A stretch of DNA of 64,000 bases, taken from Parasitella parasitica NRRL 2501 (lineage: Eukaryota; Fungi; Mucoromycota). Made by a program: the position numbers and the translations under genes. The DNA lies in contig MU619397.1 of assembly GCA_025201805.1 (NCBI GenBank), forward strand, positions 236 through 64,235, read 5' to 3'. Positions 3,848 to 51,894 of the stretch are shown piece after piece (positions within the stretch are counted from its first letter, which is position 1; each line of letters opens with the position of its first letter). The notes below the pieces were generated by a model, which was not told the DNA's origin, did not search any database, and was given only the letters and a program-made list of their open reading frames with translations.

Positions 3848-5165
3848 ATGAGCTCTCAACAAACTTTTCCTATCGACAATGAGCTGTTCCAATTCTATAT
3901 TCATTACCAATTACGCCTAGTCAGGAAAAGCATGTTGTTATGGGGTGATAATAGCGAAAAGGATATTATTGTCAATATCTTGAATAATTGTCAGCATGTC
4001 GAAGGAAGTACGGCAACATATAAAGCAACACACACAGATAACCTAATTTTACTTTAAAAATAGACACGCTGCGTACAATTATTAACGAAATATTCGATAA
4101 TTCAATTCTCAAGCGTACTCATCACAAAGACAAAAGTCAAAAAACTACTGACGACGTAGTCGTATTCAACGGAAGGAACACAAACACCAAACAATCAGCA
4201 GTGTCTACTGATGAAGACGGTGAACCGTTATATCTTGATTCGAGTCATGAAGAGCCTAGAATCAAAAAAGCCAAAACTTCAATTACAAGTACGCAAACGT
4301 CTACCAAATTTAAAATGGAAAATTCAAAAGGTAAAAGAGAAATCTCCAAACTTCTTGAAAGGGTCTTGAACCAAGATGCTTCCAAAGGTTTGTACATCGA
4401 GCCATTAAATCATAAGAAATTTGCCAACTTGACATTTTGAGCCTATTAGAAATAAATTGTATGGTTAAATATAAAGAAAGAAGCAGATATGTATTCCACA
4501 CCAGAATGAAAACCTTGCGCGACAGTTTCAAAATCAATTATACATTTCCTGGAGAAAATTCCTCTCCTAGCACACCCAACTGCACATTTGAGGTGTTCAA
4601 ATTGTTCGACAATAGAAGCATTTTAGGTCAATGTCAACTTAACCTTACGTCGTATCGACTTGGAAAGCTAAGAGAAAAAGAGGAGCAAGTGTTGCCAATT
4701 ACGACAGTTCGAAACAACTATGAAAAGTACCACAGCTCTTTGAGGGGTATGTATCATTTGGAATAAAATCACTATGTCTATTCAATCTTTGTCTATTGAA
4801 GAAAGCTTAGACAATCCGACATTGTCTTACCGCGAATACGCAAGGTATTGTAAAATACTTGTTAAGGTTGTTGAAAGACTTGGAGCGTACCCGCTTTTCT
4901 TCCCAGAGATATTGCCTCCTAGTACCTTCAAAAAGGTAATAATGCAGTGATTAGGGAATGTTTGATATAGTCATTAAAATCTGACTAGGTGGCTCAAGAT
5001 GATTTCAGCAAGATTCAAGACTATTTTGACGAGCTATTTTCAGAATTCAGGGACATTGCAAGATTTGACGACAACGATGATTTGATCTTGACAGAAAGTG
5101 CTGGGTCGAGCAACTACTCTGATGAAAAAGACGCATATCATAGCCGATTCTTGAAAAATGAATGA
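3848..5165 (+). CDS. Hypothetical protein, orphan family copy A (5 exons)
   Basis: Four GT-AG introns join the ORF pieces into one frame (MSSQQTFPIDNELFQFY...SRFLKNE*). Same exon structure as 5931-7240. Confidence 0.75.
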
Positions 5166-5445
5166 AAAAAGAGATGGAAACAATAATATATTGAAGGCAG
5201 AGAGGCGTATCCATTCAGATATTTGTATTAGTATGCAAAACGCATCATTGATTTTACAATTTATCAACAATAAAAACAAAGAGTTATATCGCCTTTATAA
5301 AATGCATAGAGACTACTGAGCACCCAATGACCCTATTAAATACTTGAGTGGATTCTGTATTTTTAACCTATTCGACCAGAAATCGAAATTTGAAGATGTG
5401 CAGTACATCCAAATCCAACATTCCCCTAGCCCCCCCCCTCTTCCT

Positions 5446-5480
<35 letters not shown>

Positions 5481-5490
5481 NNNNNNNNNN
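5481..5490. other. Assembly gap (N run) after poly-T
   Basis: 10 Ns. Confidence 0.99.
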
Positions 5491-5600
5491 CACTAAGCAA
5501 CAACTATAGCGCAAATTATACTTCCCTCAGTAATATAACCAAGAAGTTGGTTATCGTCAATATATTAAATGAAATTAAAGATGCCAATGAAAGCAAGTAC
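5491..5600 (+). pseudogene. Relic of exon 1 of a third orphan-family copy
   Basis: KKLVIVNILNEIKDANES aligns with copy A EKDIIVNILNNCQHVEGS. It is followed by a splice-donor-like sequence, and the 5' part abuts the N gap. Confidence 0.45.
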
Positions 5601-5930
5601 CTCAAATCGTAAATAATCAAAAAATTAAGCTGTATTTAAAGCTAAGAGATCAACGCTTAAGAACTACAAATGAACCTGATTATTCTGTGTCGTTATCACA
5701 CTGGTAACATTTGACTTGACTAATAGTACCAGATAACCGCATTTGATTAATAGCGTGTATTCAATATCATTATTTTACGTATCTTGAAAAGCCTTTCTTA
5801 CAGCTGTATCACATACAGTAAATATAGAACCTTCAGTCATTGTTTATAAACTTGAAATAAGAAACGCGCCCCGTCTCCCAAAATCCCCTTTCTTTTTCTC
5901 TCTTATACCTTTACACACATTATATTCAAA

Positions 5931-7240
5931 ATGGCAATAAATGTCAAGAAAGAGCCTCCTACAGCTATTGACAACGAGCTGTTTCAGTTTTATACTCGAT
6001 ATCAAATGTGCCAAATAAAAAAGAGTACCTCTTTGTGGAATAACAGCAAGGAAAAAGAGGCTATGTTGACTATTCTCACAGAATTTGAAAATGTTGATGG
6101 CAGTAAGTTATATATGAATGTCATTCATACTCGTCTAACATTTTCTTATTAGACACTCTTCGTCTTATTGTAAACCAGATATTTGAGAATTCTATTCAAA
6201 AGTTTAATAATTCAGATAAAGAATCAGAAGGAATGAATGTAGACACTACTGTAATCCATTCAGCACCAACGAACGAAACTGGAGCAACAAAGATGGAAGC
6301 TCTTGAAAGTAAGCAAGATAACTGTGAAGACGAGTTGGAAGAAGCAAGCACAAGCGATAGTCATGCCAAAAATATGATTTCAGTCGTACCATTAGTAGAG
6401 AATGAAGCGCCTATCATTGTTCCCAAGAACATACAAGAGATCTTGTCACTCCCATCAATTGAAGGTTTGTAGATCAAAATTTAGTTTGAATAATGGGCCT
6501 AATATTGCTTCCAGAAATCCAACACATGACAACCCATATTGAGCGAAGCAAATATATACTCTTGAAAAGAATGAGGGTTGTAGATGAAAGCTTCAAGTTC
6601 AAGGCATCAGCTCAAAATGCATCGTATACTGTTCGTGTGTATAACTTGTTAGGCAATTCCCGTAGTCCCTTATACCAAAGCCAATTGAATCTCATTGCTT
6701 ATCGGTTTGGGAAAGTGGTTCAACATGAAACGCTTTATTCAAGTCAAAATGTAAAGGAAGTCGAACGAAAATTATATGGCGATTTAATTCGTATGCACAC
6801 TAGCACTATTTCTTGTACACGTTGCTCAAATTTTGTTCGTAGGAGAAATGAAAAAATTCGGAAGAAAATGGATTGCACCATATGCTAGATTCATCAGATA
6901 TAGCGAGAAAGTAGTAAAAACTGTCGAAAAAATTGGCGTTTACGCTTGTTTTATTCCAGAAGTACTGTCACCCTATGTATTACAAACTGTAAGTTATGCA
7001 AAATTTTCATATATGGCCTGACGCTAAATTTTTTATTGTTTTATGTGTACGTAGATTAGTCGAGAAAGGCTTCCTATTGTTCAGAAATATATTGACATGA
7101 GGTTTAGTCAGTTCAAATCTCTTGCTAAATACGAAACTGATGGAAAAATGATATTGACAAACTTGAAAACTTTGGGTAAAAATGTAAGCAAAAGAAATGA
7201 GGACTACAAGGAAAGTCGATTCTTGAATAGTTGCAACTGA
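5931..7240 (+). CDS. Hypothetical protein, orphan family copy B (5 exons)
   Basis: MAINVKKEPPTAIDNELFQFY...QLNLIAYRFGK...SRFLNSCN*. Four introns at positions equivalent to copy A. Confidence 0.75.
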
Positions 7241-29819: not shown

Positions 29820-30949
29820 AACGTGTTTTGGGTTTTCTTAGTCCATCGCTGTCTAGCACATGTCGATTTGTTTAATAAAATGCAATTACTGGGTTGTGAA
29901 TAGATATTTGGGTATTTTATTTGTTACACATCGTTCTTCGTTCAGGCTAAATGAGCAATATTTGACAGACCCCTATTTGAAACGAACATGCAAATTGGAA
30001 TAGTTGTAGCCACAGAAAATATTCGATCACGTTAAGTGAATAGTAGAGTAAGGGGTCTGATAACAGCATATTGTAGTTTAAATTGATAGGCAAAGAACAT
30101 TCCAAAGTTACCAAATGAACAAACAGTTTAACACAGTATACTATAAGAACATTGCGTTCAAAATATGCCATGAAGTATATAAAAAGCGATAAGCAGTGTT
30201 GTGAGGGCTCGATAACGGGCTGTAAAATTACCTGTGCTTTAGATATAATACACTTATTCAGTTATCATGGGTTCCTTCACGTCAAGTAGTCATTATAATT
30301 AATACTACTTGTATGGTGAACAGGACAGAGAATAAAACGGAAAAATAAACTCTAGGAGATAAAATTTTTATTGATATTCCATGTGATTTGATACTTATAT
30401 GTCGCTTGCTTTGTTTGCTTGTTTACTTGATCGCTCACAACAGCAGGATACCGTCAAAGTGTGTTGTCTATAGACTTGCATAGTAGAAATCAATATCTAT
30501 TTCAATTATGCCCTATTATTATTGTTAAAATTAAAATGGTTGTTTATTTTATAATTTAAAATTGATACTTCTCAATTATTGTAAGTGGTGCCCAGTAGAT
30601 GCAGGCGCTGTCGAACTCTGGGGGGGGGGGAGATTGCAAGTGAGAAATCAAAAAAAAAGAAGGGGATTGGATTTATAAAAAAGATTGGCAGTGAAAAAAT
30701 CAGACGAACTCATGAGACTACTGCTATACGGACCTTTGCAACCATTTTTTCACTTGAATTTATATAATATGGACCTTATTTACTATCAACCTTTTGTCGA
30801 TAATTATATGTATGATGAGAGCGATGACAATGTCAAAAAGTGCAAATGGTTGATGCCGTAGCAAATCTCACTGAAGAAATGGAATTCGTATCAATAAATC
30901 AATCAAGGGAATACCATCATTTTGCAGTTTCTAAAAAAAAAGTTCCAGC

Positions 30950-32602
30950 AAATGATAAAAGTCATGGTGATTGTAATAATATATATTAGGGTTTCTGGTA
31001 ACAAAGCTGTTATTTCTGATAAAAGCTGAGAAGCTTCTGAGAGAGGAGAAATGTCTCCCTAAGAATATTTCAAGTAGGACTAGAAGTATTAAATGCAATC
31101 ACATTTTTAGTTTAAAAATGCCCAAGAAAACATTTTGTAATGATATGCGAAATTGCGACGCCTTAATTATTTTATTTTTGATCAAACAGCCATTGTGCAG
31201 GAGCAATAGGTATTTTGAAATGAATGACCATTTGGGTTTTTTATCATCCCATTTTTCAATACAATGAGAATTCTTTATCAACACTTTCGACATATACTTC
31301 AGAGCCTGAAACTGAACAATCACCAACGGGCCACAAAACAAAATTGTTTGAATTCCATAATGTTTAAATGTTGATATATTACTTCAGATATAGCCGTTAG
31401 ATATTGGACATCTAAATAAGCTCAAATATTTAGACAAGTCTATAGAACTTCAAAGGTATTTAAACTAAATTGCAAACCCATCAAAGTATCAAAGTATCAA
31501 AGTGCATATACTAGGAAGGCATTAAGTTGTACGTATCCGTCAAATTATGGCATTTACGGTGCTTCCACTCTCAATTTACTGAATTTTTGAAAAGACTGCC
31601 CACTATTTTGAAAAAAATTGCCCACTTGTGCGAGGCTAAATTGCCCATAAAAGTGAGACTAATTTGACCAAGTGTTTGAAGCTAGTTTGACCAGCTTCTT
31701 GACAAATATTTTAACCAAATTTTTGATATTATATTATATGAGCTCTGTAGCAGCTCTTTACCCTTCAATCGATTATTATACGGCTGAGGTTACTTTTTAT
31801 TTGTAAAATGATTTGACAAGCAGTGTCAGTTCATTGCAATCAGAATCATGGAATCACAGGAATCCTTACATTTTTCACTCTCATTTACTCAAATAAACTC
31901 TAGATATCTGATTGAGTTCGTCAATAGAGCCAAAGACTCTTCTTTCGTTTTCAAATACTACGAATTTTGAGCAGACATTAACAAAGATACTTCTAGCACC
32001 TTCAATGTGCAATCTATTAGTGCATGATTATCTATCAGCTAGCCGCAGTTAATAATTATAATGGTATATATAGACGATGATTTAACAGTTAGCAATTCTT
32101 TATTAATATGAGCACACTTTTTAGAAATAAGTAAATCGCTTTTCTTATTTTGCTATTGTAACTGAATTGTGGATTGTTGACGTTGCTGATGTTGTTGTGC
32201 CTGTTGATGCTGTTGTGCTTGTTGTTGTACCTGTCTTTTGAGATAAACTTCTTTCATGAAATCATTTATTTGCTTCGTTGAACGTATTCTTTAGCGTTTT
32301 GTAATTCTTATATCTGGTGAAGTAACCGTCGGCCAACCCATTCTCGTAGCATACTTTCCAGTTCATCTGTTTGTGGGTTTTTAGATATTCAATCTTGAAT
32401 TCTCTGGCATACGTCATGTCATCAAGTGGTTCAGGTGGTATTGTTTGTAAAATGTCAATGTGGTTCCTTTCTTTTGGCGGTTCAACATTCGGTGGCAGAT
32501 CCGATGGCGTTGGCATTTCGTCAGAATCAGTGCTGTATTGCCACCGGTACTTATGTAGACATGTCTCCGTGTACAAAACGCCTGCACTTGCTAGATTTCG
32601 GA
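30950..32602. repeat. Left arm of 1653-bp inverted repeat
   Basis: Reverse complement of 33426-35078. Mirrored ORFs in the track (31099-31341 vs 34687-34929; 32262 vs 33766) all sum to 66028. The only mismatches noticed are at 30969 and 30975. Confidence 0.97.
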
Positions 32603-33766
32603 TTAGTTGGTATGTATAGCTGTAAACTATTGTTGAGTTTCCTACTGATGTTGTTAATTTATATAGGCCAGCATGCAGTTGATAACTACAAAGTCCAAAG
32701 TGGAGAATGGCTGGACGGAAAACGCGTGGATATTCTTCTAATTCCTATCACTACCATCTCTGAATCATTACCGCCTGTCCTAATCGAAATACAAAACATT
32801 GTCGACAAAGCTTATATACACAGATTGAATCAATATTGCAGTAATATTTATGATGAATACTGTAATATAGAGCCGGTTGTTCTCACGATTTGTATCAAAA
32901 ACACGCGGGCAGAACTATGCAAAAGGTTTTCTTGTAGCTCTAAAGCTCCATATTTAAAACGGCTGCCAAGTGACTTTTGGGCAAAGGAACACTTAATCAT
33001 GACCCCTACAACTGTTACAGATTATCTTGATACTCATAGTAATCACAATGGCCCAAATACCAACGACCCAAATACCAACGACCCAAATAGCATTGACCCA
33101 AATAGCATCGATCCAAGTAGCAACGACCCAAATAGCATTGACCCTAGTAGCAACAACAGTAGCATAAATAATGCTGAACCACTTCCTCCTTTGCTCGCGC
33201 TAGGTTATGTATTTATGGAACAAAAATGCTCTTTATTCGGATTGCAGTACAAGGAAGATCCGACCGTGATACTACTTTACAGAATTGCTAAAGAAGCCCT
33301 GGATCATCATCTTCAAGACCATCAATCTACTGTCGATAGCTTGGTGGATGTCACTAAAGAGACTCAAAAGCAGTTCAGAAGAATCCTTGAAGCAACAAAC
33401 GAAAATGAACCAAACTTGAAAAGAGTCCGAAATCTAGCAAGTGCAGGCGTTTTGTACACGGAGACATGTCTACATAAGTACCGGTGGCAATACAGCACTG
33501 ATTCTGACGAAATGCCAACGCCATCGGATCTGCCACCGAATGTTGAACCGCCAAAAGAAAGGAACCACATTGACATTTTACAAACAATACCACCTGAACC
33601 ACTTGATGACATGACGTATGCCAGAGAATTCAAGATTGAATATCTAAAAACCCACAAACAGATGAACTGGAAAGTATGCTACGAGAATGGGTTGGCCGAC
33701 GGTTACTTCACCAGATATAAGAATTACAAAACGCTAAAGAATACGTTCAACGAAGCAAATAAATGA
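32603..33766 (+). CDS. PD-(D/E)XK nuclease-like protein (Rpn/PDDEXK_2-like Mucorales family), native 5' end apparently missing
   Basis: WLDGKRVDILL..PPVLIEIQ..DKAYIHRLNQY motif (D...ExQ...R..Y). A 57-nt GTATGT..TAG intron at 32610-32666 is preceded by only about 7 nt of non-arm sequence. The frame stays open upstream into the left arm (track ORF 32426-33766). Confidence 0.65.
   Translation, partial: LVGMYSCKLLLSFLLMLLIYIGQHAVDNYKVQSGEWLDGKRVDILLIPITTISESLPPVLIEIQNIVDKAYIHRLNQYCSNIYDEYCNIEPVVLTICIKNTRAELCKRFSCSSKAPYLKRLPSDFWAKEHLIMTPTTVTDYLDTHSNHNGPNTNDPNTNDPNSIDPNSIDPSSNDPNSIDPSSNNSSINNAEPLPPLLALGYVFMEQKCSLFGLQYKEDPTVILLYRIAKEALDHHLQDHQSTVDSLVDVTKETQKQFRRILEATNENEPNLKRVRNLASAGVLYTETCLHKYRWQYSTDSDEMPTPSDLPPNVEPPKERNHIDILQTIPPEPLDDMTYAREFKIEYLKTHKQMNWKVCYENGLADGYFTRYKNYKTLKNTFNEANK
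33046..33160 (+). repeat. 15-nt coding tandem repeat (N/I-D-P-N/S-T/S) x ~7
   Basis: NGPNTNDPNTNDPNSIDPNSIDPSSNDPNSIDPSS. Confidence 0.9.
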
Positions 33767-35078
33767 TTTCATGAAAGAAGTTTATCTCAAAAGACAGGTA
33801 CAACAACAAGCACAACAGCATCAACAGGCACAACAACATCAGCAACGTCAACAATCCACAATTCAGTTACAATAGCAAAATAAGAAAAGCGATTTACTTA
33901 TTTCTAAAAAGTGTGCTCATATTAATAAAGAATTGCTAACTGTTAAATCATCGTCTATATATACCATTATAATTATTAACTGCGGCTAGCTGATAGATAA
34001 TCATGCACTAATAGATTGCACATTGAAGGTGCTAGAAGTATCTTTGTTAATGTCTGCTCAAAATTCGTAGTATTTGAAAACGAAAGAAGAGTCTTTGGCT
34101 CTATTGACGAACTCAATCAGATATCTAGAGTTTATTTGAGTAAATGAGAGTGAAAAATGTAAGGATTCCTGTGATTCCATGATTCTGATTGCAATGAACT
34201 GACACTGCTTGTCAAATCATTTTACAAATAAAAAGTAACCTCAGCCGTATAATAATCGATTGAAGGGTAAAGAGCTGCTACAGAGCTCATATAATATAAT
34301 ATCAAAAATTTGGTTAAAATATTTGTCAAGAAGCTGGTCAAACTAGCTTCAAACACTTGGTCAAATTAGTCTCACTTTTATGGGCAATTTAGCCTCGCAC
34401 AAGTGGGCAATTTTTTTCAAAATAGTGGGCAGTCTTTTCAAAAATTCAGTAAATTGAGAGTGGAAGCACCGTAAATGCCATAATTTGACGGATACGTACA
34501 ACTTAATGCCTTCCTAGTATATGCACTTTGATACTTTGATACTTTGATGGGTTTGCAATTTAGTTTAAATACCTTTGAAGTTCTATAGACTTGTCTAAAT
34601 ATTTGAGCTTATTTAGATGTCCAATATCTAACGGCTATATCTGAAGTAATATATCAACATTTAAACATTATGGAATTCAAACAATTTTGTTTTGTGGCCC
34701 GTTGGTGATTGTTCAGTTTCAGGCTCTGAAGTATATGTCGAAAGTGTTGATAAAGAATTCTCATTGTATTGAAAAATGGGATGATAAAAAACCCAAATGG
34801 TCATTCATTTCAAAATACCTATTGCTCCTGCACAATGGCTGTTTGATCAAAAATAAAATAATTAAGGCGTCGCAATTTCGCATATCATTACAAAATGTTT
34901 TCTTGGGCATTTTTAAACTAAAAATGTGATTGCATTTAATACTTCTAGTCCTACTTGAAATATTCTTAGGGAGACATTTCTCCTCTCTCAGAAGCTTCTC
35001 AGCTTTTATCAGAAATAACAGCTTTGTTACCAGAAACCCTAATATATATTATCACAATTACCATGACTTTTATCATTT
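33426..35078. repeat. Right arm of 1653-bp inverted repeat
   Basis: See left arm. Confidence 0.97.
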
Positions 35079-35376
35079 TGTTTGAAGCTTTTTTCAGGGA
35101 TCATAAAAAGACTGTACGTTCAGATAGGGTCTATCAATAATTGTTCATATTTTCTCAATAGACTAATAATTTTTTTCTTATTTAGGAAAAGGCATGGGGA
35201 TGACCGTTTAGGTTAGATAGCTGAACGAAAAAACCGATGTCTTTTATAAATAAATGAGTTTCTCAAAACCCAGAACTATAAAACCAAGACAGTGACAGGA
35301 TTCCTTGCAATGAGCGGAATAATATTGTTTAATCACTGGTTTCCCCACACATATCACACTTTTGTATACTTGGTGA

Positions 35377-36991
35377 ATGACCCCAAAAGAAGAGAAACAG
35401 TTTATAGGAGCAGTAGACCAAGGCACAACTTCATCGAGGTTTTTGATATTTGACCAGCAAGGCAACTTGATAACATTTCATCAGGTTGAGCTGCCACAAT
35501 CACAGCCGCATGCTGGGTATTTCAACGCACAAAATTTTTGTTGTCTTAATTCTTATTGACTTGCCATGAATTAGTTGGCTAGAGCATGATCCCATGGATA
35601 TTCTCAATACAGTTTTAGCATGCATCCACGAAACAATTAAGCGATTCGAGTTGATGGGATACAGCGTAGAGGACATCAAAGGCATTGGTATAACCAACCA
35701 AAGAGAATCCGCTGTATGCTGGAACAAGTCAACTGGAGAACCTTTGAGAAACACCATCGTATGGAGTGATGTGAGAACAGACGATATCGTGCACCAACTA
35801 AAGAAACGTGACAATGCACACATTGTTCTAGAGATTTCAGGTCTTGATATTACATCCTATTTTACAGCCGTCAAATTTCGATGGATGCTGGATCATGACG
35901 AGGGCGTAAAAAAGGCAGTGAGGGAAGGAAATGCTTGCTTTGGCACTGTGGATAGCTGGCTTATTTATAAATTAAGTGGTGGAGAAGCCCACGTTACTGA
36001 TGTGACTAATGCCAGCAGAACGCTGCTCATGAATCTCAAGACGCTCGAGTGGGACCAAGATCTCTTGAAGTTTTTCGATATCCCAAGAGAATTGCTGCCT
36101 ACTGTATGCTCTTCATCTGAAATCTATGGTACCATTGCATTCAAGGGCTCCCCTTTGGCAGGAATTCCCATCTCTGGCTGTCTGGGTGACCAACAGGCTG
36201 CATTATTAGGCCAGAAATGCTTTAGAGAAGGTGAAGCCAAATGCACCTTTGGCACTGGTGCTTTCATGCTTTTTAACACTGGCCAAAAAGCTGTCAAATC
36301 AACGCATGGACTAATCACAACCATAGCTTTTCAGCTTGGAAAGGATGCCAAGGCGACTTATGCTCTAGAAGGATCCATGGCTGTTGCTGGATCTTCGCTT
36401 CGCTGGCTGCGCGACAACCTGAAGCTGATCAATTCAATGGAGCAAGTCAGCGATCTGGCCGAGCATGTCCCTGATACTGGTGGTGTTTATTTTGTCACTG
36501 CATTTTCTGGGCTATTTGCGCCTTACTGGAGAGACGATGCACGAGGCACCATGGTAGGCCTTACTAGTTATACAAACAAGTACCATTTGGCTCGAGCAAC
36601 GCTGGAATCCATGTCGTTTCAAACACGGGCCATTTTGGAAGCCATGAATCAAGACGCAGGCGTCCCGTTAAAGGTTCTTAAAGTAGATGGAGGTGTATCT
36701 AACTCCAACGTTGCTATGCAGATCCAGGCGGATATTTTAGGCCTTGAAGTGGATCGACCCTCTATGCGAGAAACTACCGCATTTGGCACAGCTATTGCAG
36801 CAGGGTTGGCTGTTGGGGTTTGGAATAGCATCCATGATTTGGATCAAGTCAATAACGAAGACATCACATCCTTTACTCCTAATTTGACGTTGCAAGAAAG
36901 AGAAGAAAAGTACAAGATATGGAAAAAAGCGGTTGATAGTTCGCTTCACTGGACAGATGATGTGGATAGTACAAGTAGTGATGAGGAATAA
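35377..36991 (+). CDS. GUT1: Glycerol kinase
   Basis: GAVDQGTTSSRF, GITNQRE, TDVTNASRT, GDQQAAL, AKCTFGTG, FSGLFAPYW, KVDGG. One intron at about 35517-35574. Confidence 0.96.
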
Positions 36992-50763: not shown

Positions 50764-51894
50764 AGTGCACTTAATACGGATGTTTGAAAACACTGCTCAC
50801 TTTTTTGATGAAGCTAATTTGCTCAACATTTCGAGAATAAATTGCCCGTATTTCATGTTCAAGTGCTATTCTGGAGATGTCATACAACATCTGCACTATT
50901 GGATCATCCCTGTATTCCAAACTAAGCAGTGAGACTTCTTGTTTTGTTAATACATGTATCCGAGTGCAACCATTTCTGATAGCGGCGTGATTAAGAAATC
51001 CGAGATGAAGGACCGTTGAAGTATTGTTGAACGTCTGTGAAAATAACTAGGATCAATATAAAAGAATAATAGAGGCAATTGAAGAGGATGGAAATGATTC
51101 AAAACCAAATGATGGCTTGATCTACAATGAAACATGTATACGAAAATACACAAAGCAGCTTTCTAATTCATCCATGCCAAAGCCTTTAGCGTTATCACCA
51201 ACAGTTCAGGCAAGTAGCAGTAGAAAATCCAATCATAAAAGTCCATTGAGAACCACTGCTCCAAACCCAAAAATAGACAGATATGGAATGGGTAAAAGAG
51301 TTTGTTGAAGAATATAGGACTACAAAAAAGAGAATGAATTGGAAAACGTGCTTTGACGAGGGACGTAATGCTGGTTATCTGGGAACATATTCAAATCCTC
51401 AAAGTCTTAAAAACACCTTTAACAAGCTTAATCCAAAACATTAATTATGTTTTATATCATTTGAGTTTATTCATACCAACATTCTATCCCCATCCATTTA
51501 TAATTACAATAGTAGTTGATATACATGTACCAGTTTTTTTTTATTCCTTATTTCTTTTAATATGTATAGTAAATAAGATATCTGTAAGAATCTTTATAGG
51601 ATCTGGAGTTTTGAACGCATATAACTGTATACCTTTCACCTTATTCGTCTGAACTTAACCCTATCGAGATGGATTGAAAATGTTCAAGAACCGAGTCCGA
51701 AGAAGTAAATTGGCAAATGCAGAAACACTTTCTTCAAGACTATTTCTGTTGAACACATACAAGATTTCATCCAGCACTTGATCGACGTATCCCTCAAATG
51801 CTTGAATAAAAAGTGGGCAATTTATTATCGAAATTAGTTTCAAAAAAGTGAGCGGTGTTTTCAAACATTCGGTAAATTGAGGGTGAAAGCATAT
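50764..51894 (+). mobile_element. Decayed, internally deleted Tc1/mariner (IS630-Tc1) DNA transposon
   Basis: Imperfect TIRs at about 50775-50850 and 51810-51894 (ATGTTTGAAAACACYGCTCACTTTTTTGA..AATAAATTGCCC). Transposase C-terminal remnants PYSSELNPIE (51639-51668), KNRVRRSKLANAETLSSR and EHIQDFIQHLIDVSLKCLNK with frameshifts. Confidence 0.8.

Follow-up and report, generated by a model that had tools for sequence, protein, structure and literature searches.

Several known processes create inverted copies of DNA. In inverted-repeat-mediated duplications, which include DUP-TRP/INV-DUP rearrangements and the foldback inversions that follow double-strand breaks, a homologous junction within a pre-existing pair of inverted repeats is combined with a blunt or microhomologous junction, and adjacent DNA ends up copied in inverted form (PMC11293582, PMC10622511, PMC3907307). 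Described examples include rearrangements in which one of the two junctions lies in inverted repeats and the other is non-homologous (PMC11293582), as well as break-induced inverted duplications (PMC10622511). The bacterial nuclease RpnA promotes RecA-independent recombination, for which its authors propose primer-template switching (PMC5350276).

The locus described here shares the two kinds of junction and the inverted product with these rearrangements. It lies in a window of 64,000 nucleotides, the whole stretch of DNA analysed, from the pin mould Parasitella parasitica NRRL 2501 (Mucorales). A mirror-image stretch of about 4.2 kb in this window is confirmed to be real, and it is probably a repair or replication scar inside nested cut-and-paste transposons.

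Structure of the palindrome

A repeat search finds a single inverted repeat, 30912-32602 against 33426-35116, with 99% complementarity and 823 nt between the arms. Base-by-base pairing at a coordinate sum of 66028 shows that the arms proper, 30950-32602 and 33426-35078, contain no indels and are mismatched only at 30969 and 30975, leaving zero differences over the inner 1627 bp in the reference. This confirms the near-perfect palindrome of the original prediction, with 1653-bp arms around an 823-bp spacer and both mismatches in the outermost part of the arms. Pairing between the arms ends abruptly at 32603, and the 38 nt beyond 30950 have partial complementarity only.

The spacer (32603..33425, plus strand) starts with the last 7 nt of an exon 1 (32603-32609) and a 57-nt intron (32610-32666), followed by a predicted PD-(D/E)XK domain. 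It includes a 15-nt tandem repeat (33026-33160) that codes for a low-complexity linker. Exon 2 of this Rpn/YhgA-like nuclease gene (32667..33766, plus strand) comprises 366 codons and a stop. As originally noted, and as the ORF coordinates confirm, the core of the ORF is in the spacer and its C-terminal 113 codons are present in each arm, a geometry in which either orientation of the spacer rebuilds the same ORF.

The right arm (33426..35078, plus strand) is taken as the original. It carries the final 113 codons with the stop (to 33766), then the gene's 3' flank, the right terminal repeat of a mariner-type element, E1b (34305-34475), and then, reversed, the left 630 bp of an outer element, E2. 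The left arm (30950..32602, minus strand) is the derived copy, an inverted duplicate of 33426-35078, which contains left-part sequence of E2 (30950-31554; the outer ~630 bp belong to a dispersed family), a copy of the mariner-type terminal repeat of E1b (31553-31723), the 3' flank and, as reverse complement, the final 113 codons (32262-32602). The right arm is collinear with a single copy in a Mucor circinelloides assembly as far as the E1b terminus, and a related assembly has one non-palindromic copy only, which matches the spacer and the right arm. Beyond the palindrome itself, the P. parasitica genome holds no further copy of the spacer or the inner arm.

Reads were judged as Logan contigs and unitigs of four public DNA runs, compared over a stretch of 5,201 letters. 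In each run, the spacer with 30 nt of arm on either side (32573-33455) forms a single unitig at single-copy depth (39, 163, 26 and 31, against 29, 160, 28 and 33 in the flanks), and a single 1158-nt arm unitig is found at about twice the single-copy depth (68, 324, 54 and 70). All four runs contain the two inner junctions as well as the join from flank to arm on either side, and k-mers cross both inner junctions, giving short-read support to the join at 32602/32603. Two of the data sets, X4 and X5, have all their variants in common and therefore represent one lineage, so that only two lineages are compared. Compared with the reference, they have three substitutions in the arms (33509, 33540 and 34408, with their mirror sites), in a single arm unitig at double depth and with no difference between the inner 1627 bp of the arms within each strain, and a 15-nt deletion at 33052, which shows that the number of tandem repeats in the spacer varies between strains. 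The structure persists in at least two strain lineages. The shared arm differences suggest arm-to-arm gene conversion, in contigs that may hide one-arm variants through bubble popping.

Nested transposons and two junctions

Judged by its ends, 30912-35116 appears to be one Tc1/mariner-like element, E2, that has kept its two unlike natural termini. Its outermost 38 nt on the left (30912..30949, plus strand), outside the perfect palindrome, consist of a TA followed by a right-type terminus that matches the right end of another copy, L032, at 33 of 38 positions and the left end of that copy at 23 of 38. The outermost 38 nt on the right (35079..35116, minus strand) align as a left-type terminus followed by a TA, so that TA flanks the element at both 30912 and 35116. 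A degenerate pattern for the right-type terminus has 70 sites in the genome, the 30912 end among them, and a pattern for the left-type terminus has 58; neither has any in the control. Pairs of left and right termini 1.5-3 kb apart occur at least 14 times in the genome and never in the controls, and the element in the window, with a right-type terminus on its left and a left-type terminus on its right, resembles these ordinary copies. The outer 630 bp of each arm represent the left part of this 1.9-2.9-kb family. Other copies run on past the position equivalent to 31557, are non-palindromic and have terminal repeats of only 106-167 bp; the one 2.9-kb copy that was examined for ORFs has short ORFs only.

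E1b (31553..34475) is a mariner-type element with TA flanks and terminal repeats of ~170 bp that are ~80% identical to those of a transposase-encoding family, E1. Its terminal repeat begins at a TA exactly where the E2 sequence breaks off, and E1b thus sits at a TA in E2, which it interrupts. TA and the same conserved terminal motif are found at both ends of five E1 copies and of the copy in the window. An ORF of E1 (L024:1448-2401) matches the Pfam family DDE_3 (3.2e-13). E1b has no transposase, carries the Rpn-like nuclease gene in its place and would be non-autonomous. It is single-copy here, and its counterpart in a Mucor assembly matches it at 96-97% identity, against just 71-77% for the syntenic genes. 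The nuclease family rides in mariner-type elements and seems to move between mould species.

The palindrome has two junctions of different kinds. One is a homologous crossover zone in the E2 terminal inverted repeat (30950..30976), where both arm mismatches are found. Outside 30950 and 35078 the ends are of unlike terminus type, and inside them the zone is identical except at 30969 and 30975; because the termini are unlike outside, as in ordinary copies, this junction is placed inside the terminal repeat. The other is a novel, non-homologous junction (32602..32603) with 0-1 nt of microhomology that cuts exon 1. The stretch homologous to intact, non-palindromic copies from three other assemblies begins either at 32603 or 13 bp ahead of it, and upstream of that breakpoint the other copies encode the native start and exon 1, unlike the arm sequence. 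This signature reads as repeat-mediated template switching followed by end joining.

The nested sequences show that E2 lay here in reverse and that E1b was inserted at a TA 630 bp from the left end of E2. A break or a collapsed fork would then have deleted the segment between the right terminal repeat of E2 and the 5' end of the cargo gene, leaving an exposed 3' end within that repeat. This end could have annealed to the left terminal repeat, its inverted homologue at the far end of the same element or of its sister copy, and primed inward synthesis over 1.65 kb, copying the left part of E2, the E1b terminal repeat, the 3' flank and the last 113 codons. The new strand would have left its template and been bluntly joined at 32603 to the far side of the break. 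The result would be mirror-symmetric inside while retaining the unlike natural termini of E2, and the arms were afterwards apparently held identical by arm-to-arm gene conversion. By geometry alone, arm-arm recombination could flip the spacer without altering the ORF. The recent fold-back or template-switch duplication that had been suggested for this locus is thus supported, with both of its junctions resolved; the steps after nesting are inferred, as are their order and the lesion that set them off, because neither an intermediate nor an allele from before the rearrangement was seen.

Another example that follows this logic is on C44, where a mariner element together with 863 bp of one flank forms a 99% inverted repeat, with its inner edge in the element's terminal repeats.

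The cargo nuclease and alternative explanations

Exon 2 is an open frame with residues D22, E41 and Q43 intact and the native start absent, the junction at 32602/32603 having taken away the promoter and, with the start codon, the greater part of exon 1. Damage is also seen in the sister copies of two Mucor assemblies. The gene here is a beheaded, decaying piece of transposon cargo.

The cargo is predicted to belong to a Mucoromycota-specific family of Rpn/YhgA-like PD-(D/E)XK nucleases, with roughly 35 loci per genome. The label "nuclease-like", originally given to the gene, is supported by predicted-fold and profile evidence. An AlphaFold model built from 42 sequences has an overall pLDDT of 84, rising above 90 for residues 10-125, and it supersedes an earlier model from 11 sequences (pLDDT 52) for which the fold matches were helical bundles only. 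Together with a fold search, the later model predicts a restriction-endonuclease-like fold for the N-terminal domain. The top Foldseek matches, all PD-(D/E)XK nucleases, are DdmD, NucC, NucS/EndoMS, McrC and R2 (E 6e-3 to 0.3, with probabilities reaching 0.97), and VIA-align scores McrC at Z 7.2 and NucS at Z 6.6, modest values in both searches; the VIA-align list for the whole model consists mostly of matches to a helical hairpin (212-277), and few rows touch the nuclease domain. In the ESM Atlas, the structure neighbours are DUF2887, PDDEXK_2 and Transposase_31 (TM 0.33-0.47), and the nearest predicted structures beyond the fungal family itself are thus Rpn/YhgA-like families.

D22, E41, Q43 and R53 are invariant across seven orthologues and align in register with D63, E82, Q84 and R94 of RpnA, which were targets of mutagenesis (PMC5350276). 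An hhalign comparison with an RpnA-family alignment yields P 3e-4 at a probability of 39.5% (142 columns). Pfam searches of the ORF, of three orthologues and of 42 family members returned no family above threshold, and profile searches of PDB sequences returned nothing relevant.

For the gene family as a whole, homologous ORFs were indeed found inside similar palindromes. In this genome, inverted repeats of 99% identity are centred on paralogues on contigs C45 (arms of about 1.65-1.8 kb) and C62 (487 nt), and long, near-identical inverted repeats centred on homologues are found in Pilaira (arms of about 1.75 kb), Hesseltinella (about 1.3 kb) and Circinella (about 0.5 kb). C45 and C68 are 97-99% identical, yet just one of this pair is palindromic. 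None was found around the paralogues at C7, C136 and C10 or at the Mucor circinelloides, Mucor mucedo and Fennellomyces loci, and the enrichment at the family rests on about 229 kb of loci that were chosen for other reasons. The geometries of the repeats differ, and the events are therefore regarded as independent. All 11 adjacent pairs of family members in this genome are inverted, and none is in tandem. The recurrence goes beyond what a one-off accident would lead one to expect, and its cause may be tied to the family. The undescribed class of element that had been proposed is not supported at this locus, which consists of nested elements of known types instead.

Could the palindrome be one instance of a process tied to the nuclease genes? 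We consider this unlikely, but the idea is retained because long inverted repeats centre on the C45 and C62 paralogues and on homologues in three genera. In one version, the Rpn-like nuclease cuts near its own gene; in another, template switching starts from the family's built-in inverted layout, where a full-length gene faces a short N-domain paralogue; in a third, inverted copies are retained because they yield hairpin RNA, with which the strong RNAi of the Mucorales silences a selfish family. The inverted arrangement of all adjacent pairs fits such a process, as do two rearrangement breakpoints separated by 13 bp where exon 1 ends and the recombination promoted by RpnA, with its proposed template switching (PMC5350276). 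However, the cargo nuclease is unlikely to act on itself, because this copy is beheaded and the two Mucor sister copies are damaged, and C44 has a palindrome with no family member. That the family in Mucoromycota is palindrome-prone, through its own cuts or the layout of a gene with a facing mini-paralogue, with arms kept alike by conversion and perhaps retained for a silencing hairpin RNA, is a tentative and rather doubtful proposal. If it were true, this locus would be one of several independent examples, together with C45, C62, Pilaira, Hesseltinella and Circinella.

The other explanations concern the structure itself. A functional invertible cassette, in which the arms recombine to invert the core and its direction sets expression from an external promoter, would profit from perfect 1.65-kb arms, good substrates for homologous recombination, and from an ORF that is rebuilt either way. 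It is nevertheless very improbable, since the copy is decaying cargo that lacks its native start, no recombinase gene or site was seen within 30.9-35.1 kb, and the contig graph, identical for both orientations, lends no support to switching. A foldback-type mobile element moving as a 4.2-kb unit, also raised in the original prediction, would account for the long inverted arms and the TA at 30912 and 35116, yet hardly any weight can be given to it: the spacer and inner arms have no further long-arm copies in the genome, the termini are those of a common, non-palindromic Tc1/mariner-like family, and the related copy elsewhere is non-palindromic. An assembly artefact, from a collapsed or mis-walked repeat, might be feared in a draft of 450 contigs with short N gaps, where terminal inverted repeats can mislead assemblers. 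Misassembly is rejected, and its probability is close to nil, because the arms have about twice and the spacer once the single-copy depth and both inner junctions are crossed in the contigs of all four runs; the second strain lineage, with its own SNPs and 15-nt indel, also shows the same structure. A scar of template switching inside nested transposons is the reading that we prefer.

Comparison with known systems

As such a scar, the locus would be a base-resolved natural example of short transposon terminal repeats seeding a perfect palindrome of kilobase length, and it shows the cost of the event, a gene without its front end. The cargo family would be a large eukaryotic relative of the bacterial recombination-promoting nucleases, unrecognised by Pfam family models. 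If its association with palindromes is causal, it would tie a nuclease family in early-diverging fungi to the birth of palindromes or to hairpin-RNA silencing.

With the bacterial Rpn/YhgA-like nucleases (PF04754, PDDEXK_2, DUF2887), the fungal protein has in common the predicted PD-(D/E)XK fold and the D-19-E-x-Q motif with the arginine that follows it. Unlike them, the fungal gene is eukaryotic and intron-bearing, encodes a different helical C-terminal half and is often paired with a facing short paralogue. E1b resembles other Tc1/mariner elements, including non-autonomous carriers of cargo, in the TA flanks and conserved terminal motif that it shares with E1, but unlike the E1 sister copies with their DDE_3 transposase, it carries the Rpn-like nuclease gene.

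Foldback elements such as FB and Galileo likewise have kilobase inverted arms around a short middle. Here, in contrast, there is no family of copies, the arms are without subrepeats and the termini belong to an ordinary short-repeat family. The locus is also similar to hairpin-RNA loci that arise by inverted duplication of selfish genes: an antisense fragment lies upstream of the gene, and a read-through transcript would therefore be expected to fold on itself as a long hairpin RNA.

Like the sex-chromosome palindromes (PMC6790999, PMC8327919), the locus has near-identical arms that include part of a gene and diverge only at the outer edge; they also seem to vary from lineage to lineage while matching each other inside a genome. 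It is a thousand times smaller, consists of transposon DNA with a truncated gene, and its gene conversion is deduced from the contigs of two strain lineages only. From the DUP-TRP/INV-DUP rearrangements, this event differs in that the seeding repeats are the ~110-165-bp terminal repeats of a single transposon, the scale is that of kilobases within one element, and sequence is replaced with no triplicated segment added.

Structure and reality of the palindrome

A repeat search of the window returned an inverted repeat, 30912-32602 paired with 33426-35116, that is 99% complementary with 823 nt between the arms. In a base-by-base check of the 30950-32602 arm, the coordinate sum is constant at 66028, there are no indels and the only mismatches are at 30969 and 30975; pairing breaks off sharply at 32603. 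Of the 446 codons in the open reading frame at 32426-33766, the spacer contains the core and the right arm the last 113, which recur in the left arm on the opposite strand. The original prediction of a near-perfect palindrome centred on a nuclease-like gene was therefore accurate in its geometry, in placing two mismatches within the outer 26 bp and in the layout of the reading frame.

A repeat-collapse misassembly had been raised as one explanation. The locus is on contig C161 of a 32.8-Mb assembly of 450 contigs, and 20 public sequencing runs contain all or part of the stretch. Contigs of four runs were aligned to 30400-35600: X1 and X2, from which the assembly may derive; X4, a different sample and study under the same species label; and X5, which is labelled as another species, yet has all its variants in common with X4. 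All four runs have a single unitig at 32573-33455, made up of the spacer and exactly 30 nt of arm on either side, as expected from a k=31 graph in which one unique segment is flanked twice by the same repeat in opposite orientations. Its depth in the four runs (39, 163, 26 and 31) is that of the unique flanks (29, 160, 28 and 33), and the arm is represented by one unitig of 1158 nt (33426-34583, the same as 31445-32602) whose depth is roughly double that of the flanks (68, 324, 54 and 70). The flank contigs reach into both arms, the left one covering 30400-31005 and the right one starting at 35049. Misassembly is rejected because these depths and junctions permit only one path through the contig graph: flank, arm, spacer, reversed arm, flank. 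This path is the same for either orientation of the spacer. The palindrome is real and well resolved, and by its mechanism it belongs to a known kind.

The nuclease-like gene and its nested carrier elements

The ten close homologues found first are all from Mucorales and all without a name. A profile search extended the family to 764 clusters at E ≤ 0.001, with 75 matches at about 35 loci in the same genome, and a Pfam search gave no family model above threshold. An AlphaFold model built from a 42-sequence alignment has a pLDDT of 84, rising above 90 in the N-terminal domain. The best solved-structure matches of this domain are PD-(D/E)XK nucleases, namely DdmD, NucC, NucS/EndoMS, McrC and the R2 endonuclease domain, with modest scores (E 6e-3 to 0.3, probability up to 0.97, Z 6-7). 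The closest predicted structures beyond the fungal family are DUF2887, PDDEXK_2 and Transposase_31/Rpn proteins, and a language-model feature search found the same families. Profile-profile comparison with the RpnA-family alignment (P 3e-4) aligns D22, E41, Q43 and R53 with RpnA D63, E82, Q84 and R94, residues whose mutation abolishes RpnA function (PMC5350276). From these alignments and models, we read the gene as a putative eukaryotic relative, with an intron, of the bacterial recombination-promoting nucleases; it may or may not belong to PF04754 itself.

Each arm's outer ~630 bp is a member of a dispersed family, for which at least 40 matches were scored (73-90% identity). Longer fetches identified it as the left part of E2, a Tc1/mariner-like element of 1.9-2.9 kb with imperfect terminal inverted repeats of 106-167 bp. 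The E2 termini are unlike, left and right differing across the first ~20 nt; left-type termini occur at 58 sites in the genome and right-type at 70, with none in reversed controls, and at least 14 pairs, spaced 1.5-3 kb, combine a left type on one strand with a right type on the opposite strand. Other E2 copies run on beyond the equivalent of 31557, near which, at a TA, the window's E2 sequence gives way to a terminal repeat of the E1 type. E1 is a mariner-type family of ~1.7 kb that encodes a DDE_3 transposase (Pfam 3.2e-13) and has terminal repeats of 120-190 bp beginning with TA and one common conserved motif. E1b (31553-34475), its copy in the window, is ~80% identical to E1 over the terminal repeats and carries the nuclease-like gene in place of a transposase. 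The gene is thus cargo of a mariner-type element inserted into another Tc1/mariner-like element.

The Mucor circinelloides assembly has one non-palindromic copy of 32603-34408 (96% identity) that continues to the E1b terminus. E1b and its cargo (32603-34475) are 96-97% identical to the M. circinelloides (L017:9605-11450) and Mucor mucedo (L034) copies, at non-syntenic sites. The genes flanking the M. circinelloides copy are syntenic on contig C164 of the window genome at only 71-77% identity, and C164 has ~150 bp at the site occupied by the element in Mucor. It follows that E1b and the gene it carries are much younger than the split between the species, and the element was probably transferred horizontally between Mucorales. 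Parasitella parasitica, a fusion parasite, serves in the laboratory as a model for the transfer of genes to other Mucorales (PMC4807231). Comparison of the window and M. circinelloides copies gives a pS of 0.062 and a pN/pS of 0.37, with 96.9% identity in the 3' non-coding part. The window gene retains an open frame and intact catalytic residues and has lost its native start; in the M. circinelloides copy a premature stop interrupts the frame at codon 326 of 366; and the M. mucedo copy, which begins 13 bp upstream of the window's inner junction, is split by insertions. The cargo gene truncated by the palindrome is decaying. A decayed family fragment also lies at 50837-51435, with a piece at profile positions 152-191 inverted relative to the rest (207-330).

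Inverted repeats around the Rpn-like nuclease family

The original prediction looked to further palindromic copies as a sign of an undescribed element class. Its refuting condition, an absence of other palindromic copies, was not borne out, though in an unforeseen manner: the palindrome itself exists in a single copy, yet the nuclease family is repeatedly centred in long inverted repeats. Pilaira has two complete gene copies head to head, with 1.75-kb arms at 98-99% identity around a 51-bp repeat array (in Pilaira anomala, L035:3528-5822, ~40 copies of the 51-bp unit, some of them inverted, fill the 2.8-kb spacer). Hesseltinella has two complete copies tail to tail at 98-99% identity, and in Circinella the 5' part of the gene and its upstream region recur inverted downstream of it at 91-94%. 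In the window genome, C45:30658-35781 has arms of ~1.65-1.8 kb (L062:1159-2945 and 4400-6282; 99%) around another paralogue and a fragment of a facing mini-paralogue, while its 97-99% identical sister on C68 (L054) is not palindromic, having only 104- and 67-nt inverted repeats. A 487-nt palindrome on C62 (L056:1181-1667 and 1765-2251; 99%, 97-nt spacer) consists of two N-terminal gene halves and upstream DNA. These cases favour the main rival reading, that the palindrome has a cause linked to the nuclease family, which we consider unlikely. In ~229 kb of loci fetched for varied reasons, a biased sample, inverted repeats of 200 bp or more numbered six, and four of these are centred on family genes. 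Inverted duplication seems common in the transposon landscape of this genome. The idea of an undescribed element class was not supported. The palindrome lies inside nested mariner-type elements and truncates a decaying cargo gene. What merits further work is that long inverted repeats recur around an Rpn-like nuclease family that lacks annotation.

All 11 adjacent family pairs in the window genome are inverted and none is tandem; most have a full-length gene facing an N-domain-only paralogue of 160-220 codons, and the catalytic Glu is lost in four of seven such short paralogues. This two-gene module, the full-length gene converging on the short one, is seen on C60 (L047), C39 (L046), C153 (L053), C68 (L054), C54 (L055), C4 (L058), C10 (L061) and C1 (L063), in some cases flanked by inverted arrays of short tandem motifs. 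It could be a toxin/antidote-like or regulator pair.

Junctions, probable template switching and possible arm maintenance

The left end of the structure (30912-30949) is a right-type E2 terminus, matching a right end at 33/38 positions and a left end at 23/38; the opposite end, 35116-35079 in reverse, has the left type. A single E2 in reverse orientation thus bounds the structure with both of its natural termini. Inward from 30950, the "right" side of E2 duplicates the left side in mirror image. The switch point is between 30950 and 30976, inside the E2 terminal repeat where both ends are homologous, and both arm mismatches fall within this interval. At the novel junction, 32602/32603, the arm and the ancestral-type sequence overlap by 0-1 nt; position 32603 is 7 nt before a 57-nt intron (32610-32666; GTATGT donor, TAG acceptor). 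Upstream of its equivalent, the M. circinelloides copy has ~20 further codons including a start codon, and the Pilaira and C7 homologues have this N-terminal stretch too. The left arm is therefore the derived copy. In the event that formed the palindrome, the gene lost its promoter and start codon as well as most of its exon 1.

Two such junctions, one in pre-existing inverted repeats and one blunt, are the mark of repeat-mediated template switching, or else of break-induced synthesis that copies an inverted template and finishes with end joining. In an order of steps that we infer, a break or fork collapse would lead to loss of the E2 right part, the E1b left end and the gene's 5' end; the 3' end remaining in the E2 right terminal repeat would pair with the inverted left terminal repeat and copy 1.65 kb inward; and end joining at 32603 would then connect the new strand with the far side of the break. 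A second locus of the same logic is on C44 (217264-218306 and 219667-220709; L027, L049, L050): an inverted repeat of 1.05 kb (99%), made up of an E1 copy plus 863 bp from one of its flanks, has the E1 terminal repeat as its inner boundary. Its right arm is the original, because homology to a paralogous C35 segment extends 50 bp beyond that arm only.

Relative to the reference, the flanks and spacer of X4 and X5 diverge by ~0.2-0.3%, a figure that includes a 15-nt repeat-unit deletion at 33052. The 15-nt tandem repeat at 33026-33160 encodes an Asn/Asp/Pro/Ser-rich linker, and its copy number varies by strain (15 nt fewer in X4 and X5) and by species. The arm unitig of X4 and X5 has variants at three sites, 33509, 33540 and 34408 (mirror sites 32519, 32488 and 31620), and despite these it remains single and at double depth; the palindrome is therefore older than the split between the X4/X5 and reference lineages. 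Both arms seem to have changed together in the X4/X5 lineage, although contig building may hide one-arm variants. Together with the absence of differences across the inner 1627 bp of the reference arms, these apparently joint changes point to arm-to-arm gene conversion as what keeps the arms alike, in a comparison of two lineages whose contigs can mask single-arm variants.

Both aspects have counterparts in known systems. The two-junction signature has been described in human DUP-TRP/INV-DUP rearrangements and yeast break-induced inverted duplications (PMC11293582, PMC10622511, PMC3907307), which likewise combine a repeat-seeded junction with a non-homologous one. Arm-to-arm gene conversion has been described in sex-chromosome palindromes (PMC6790999), and the same process may keep the arms alike here.
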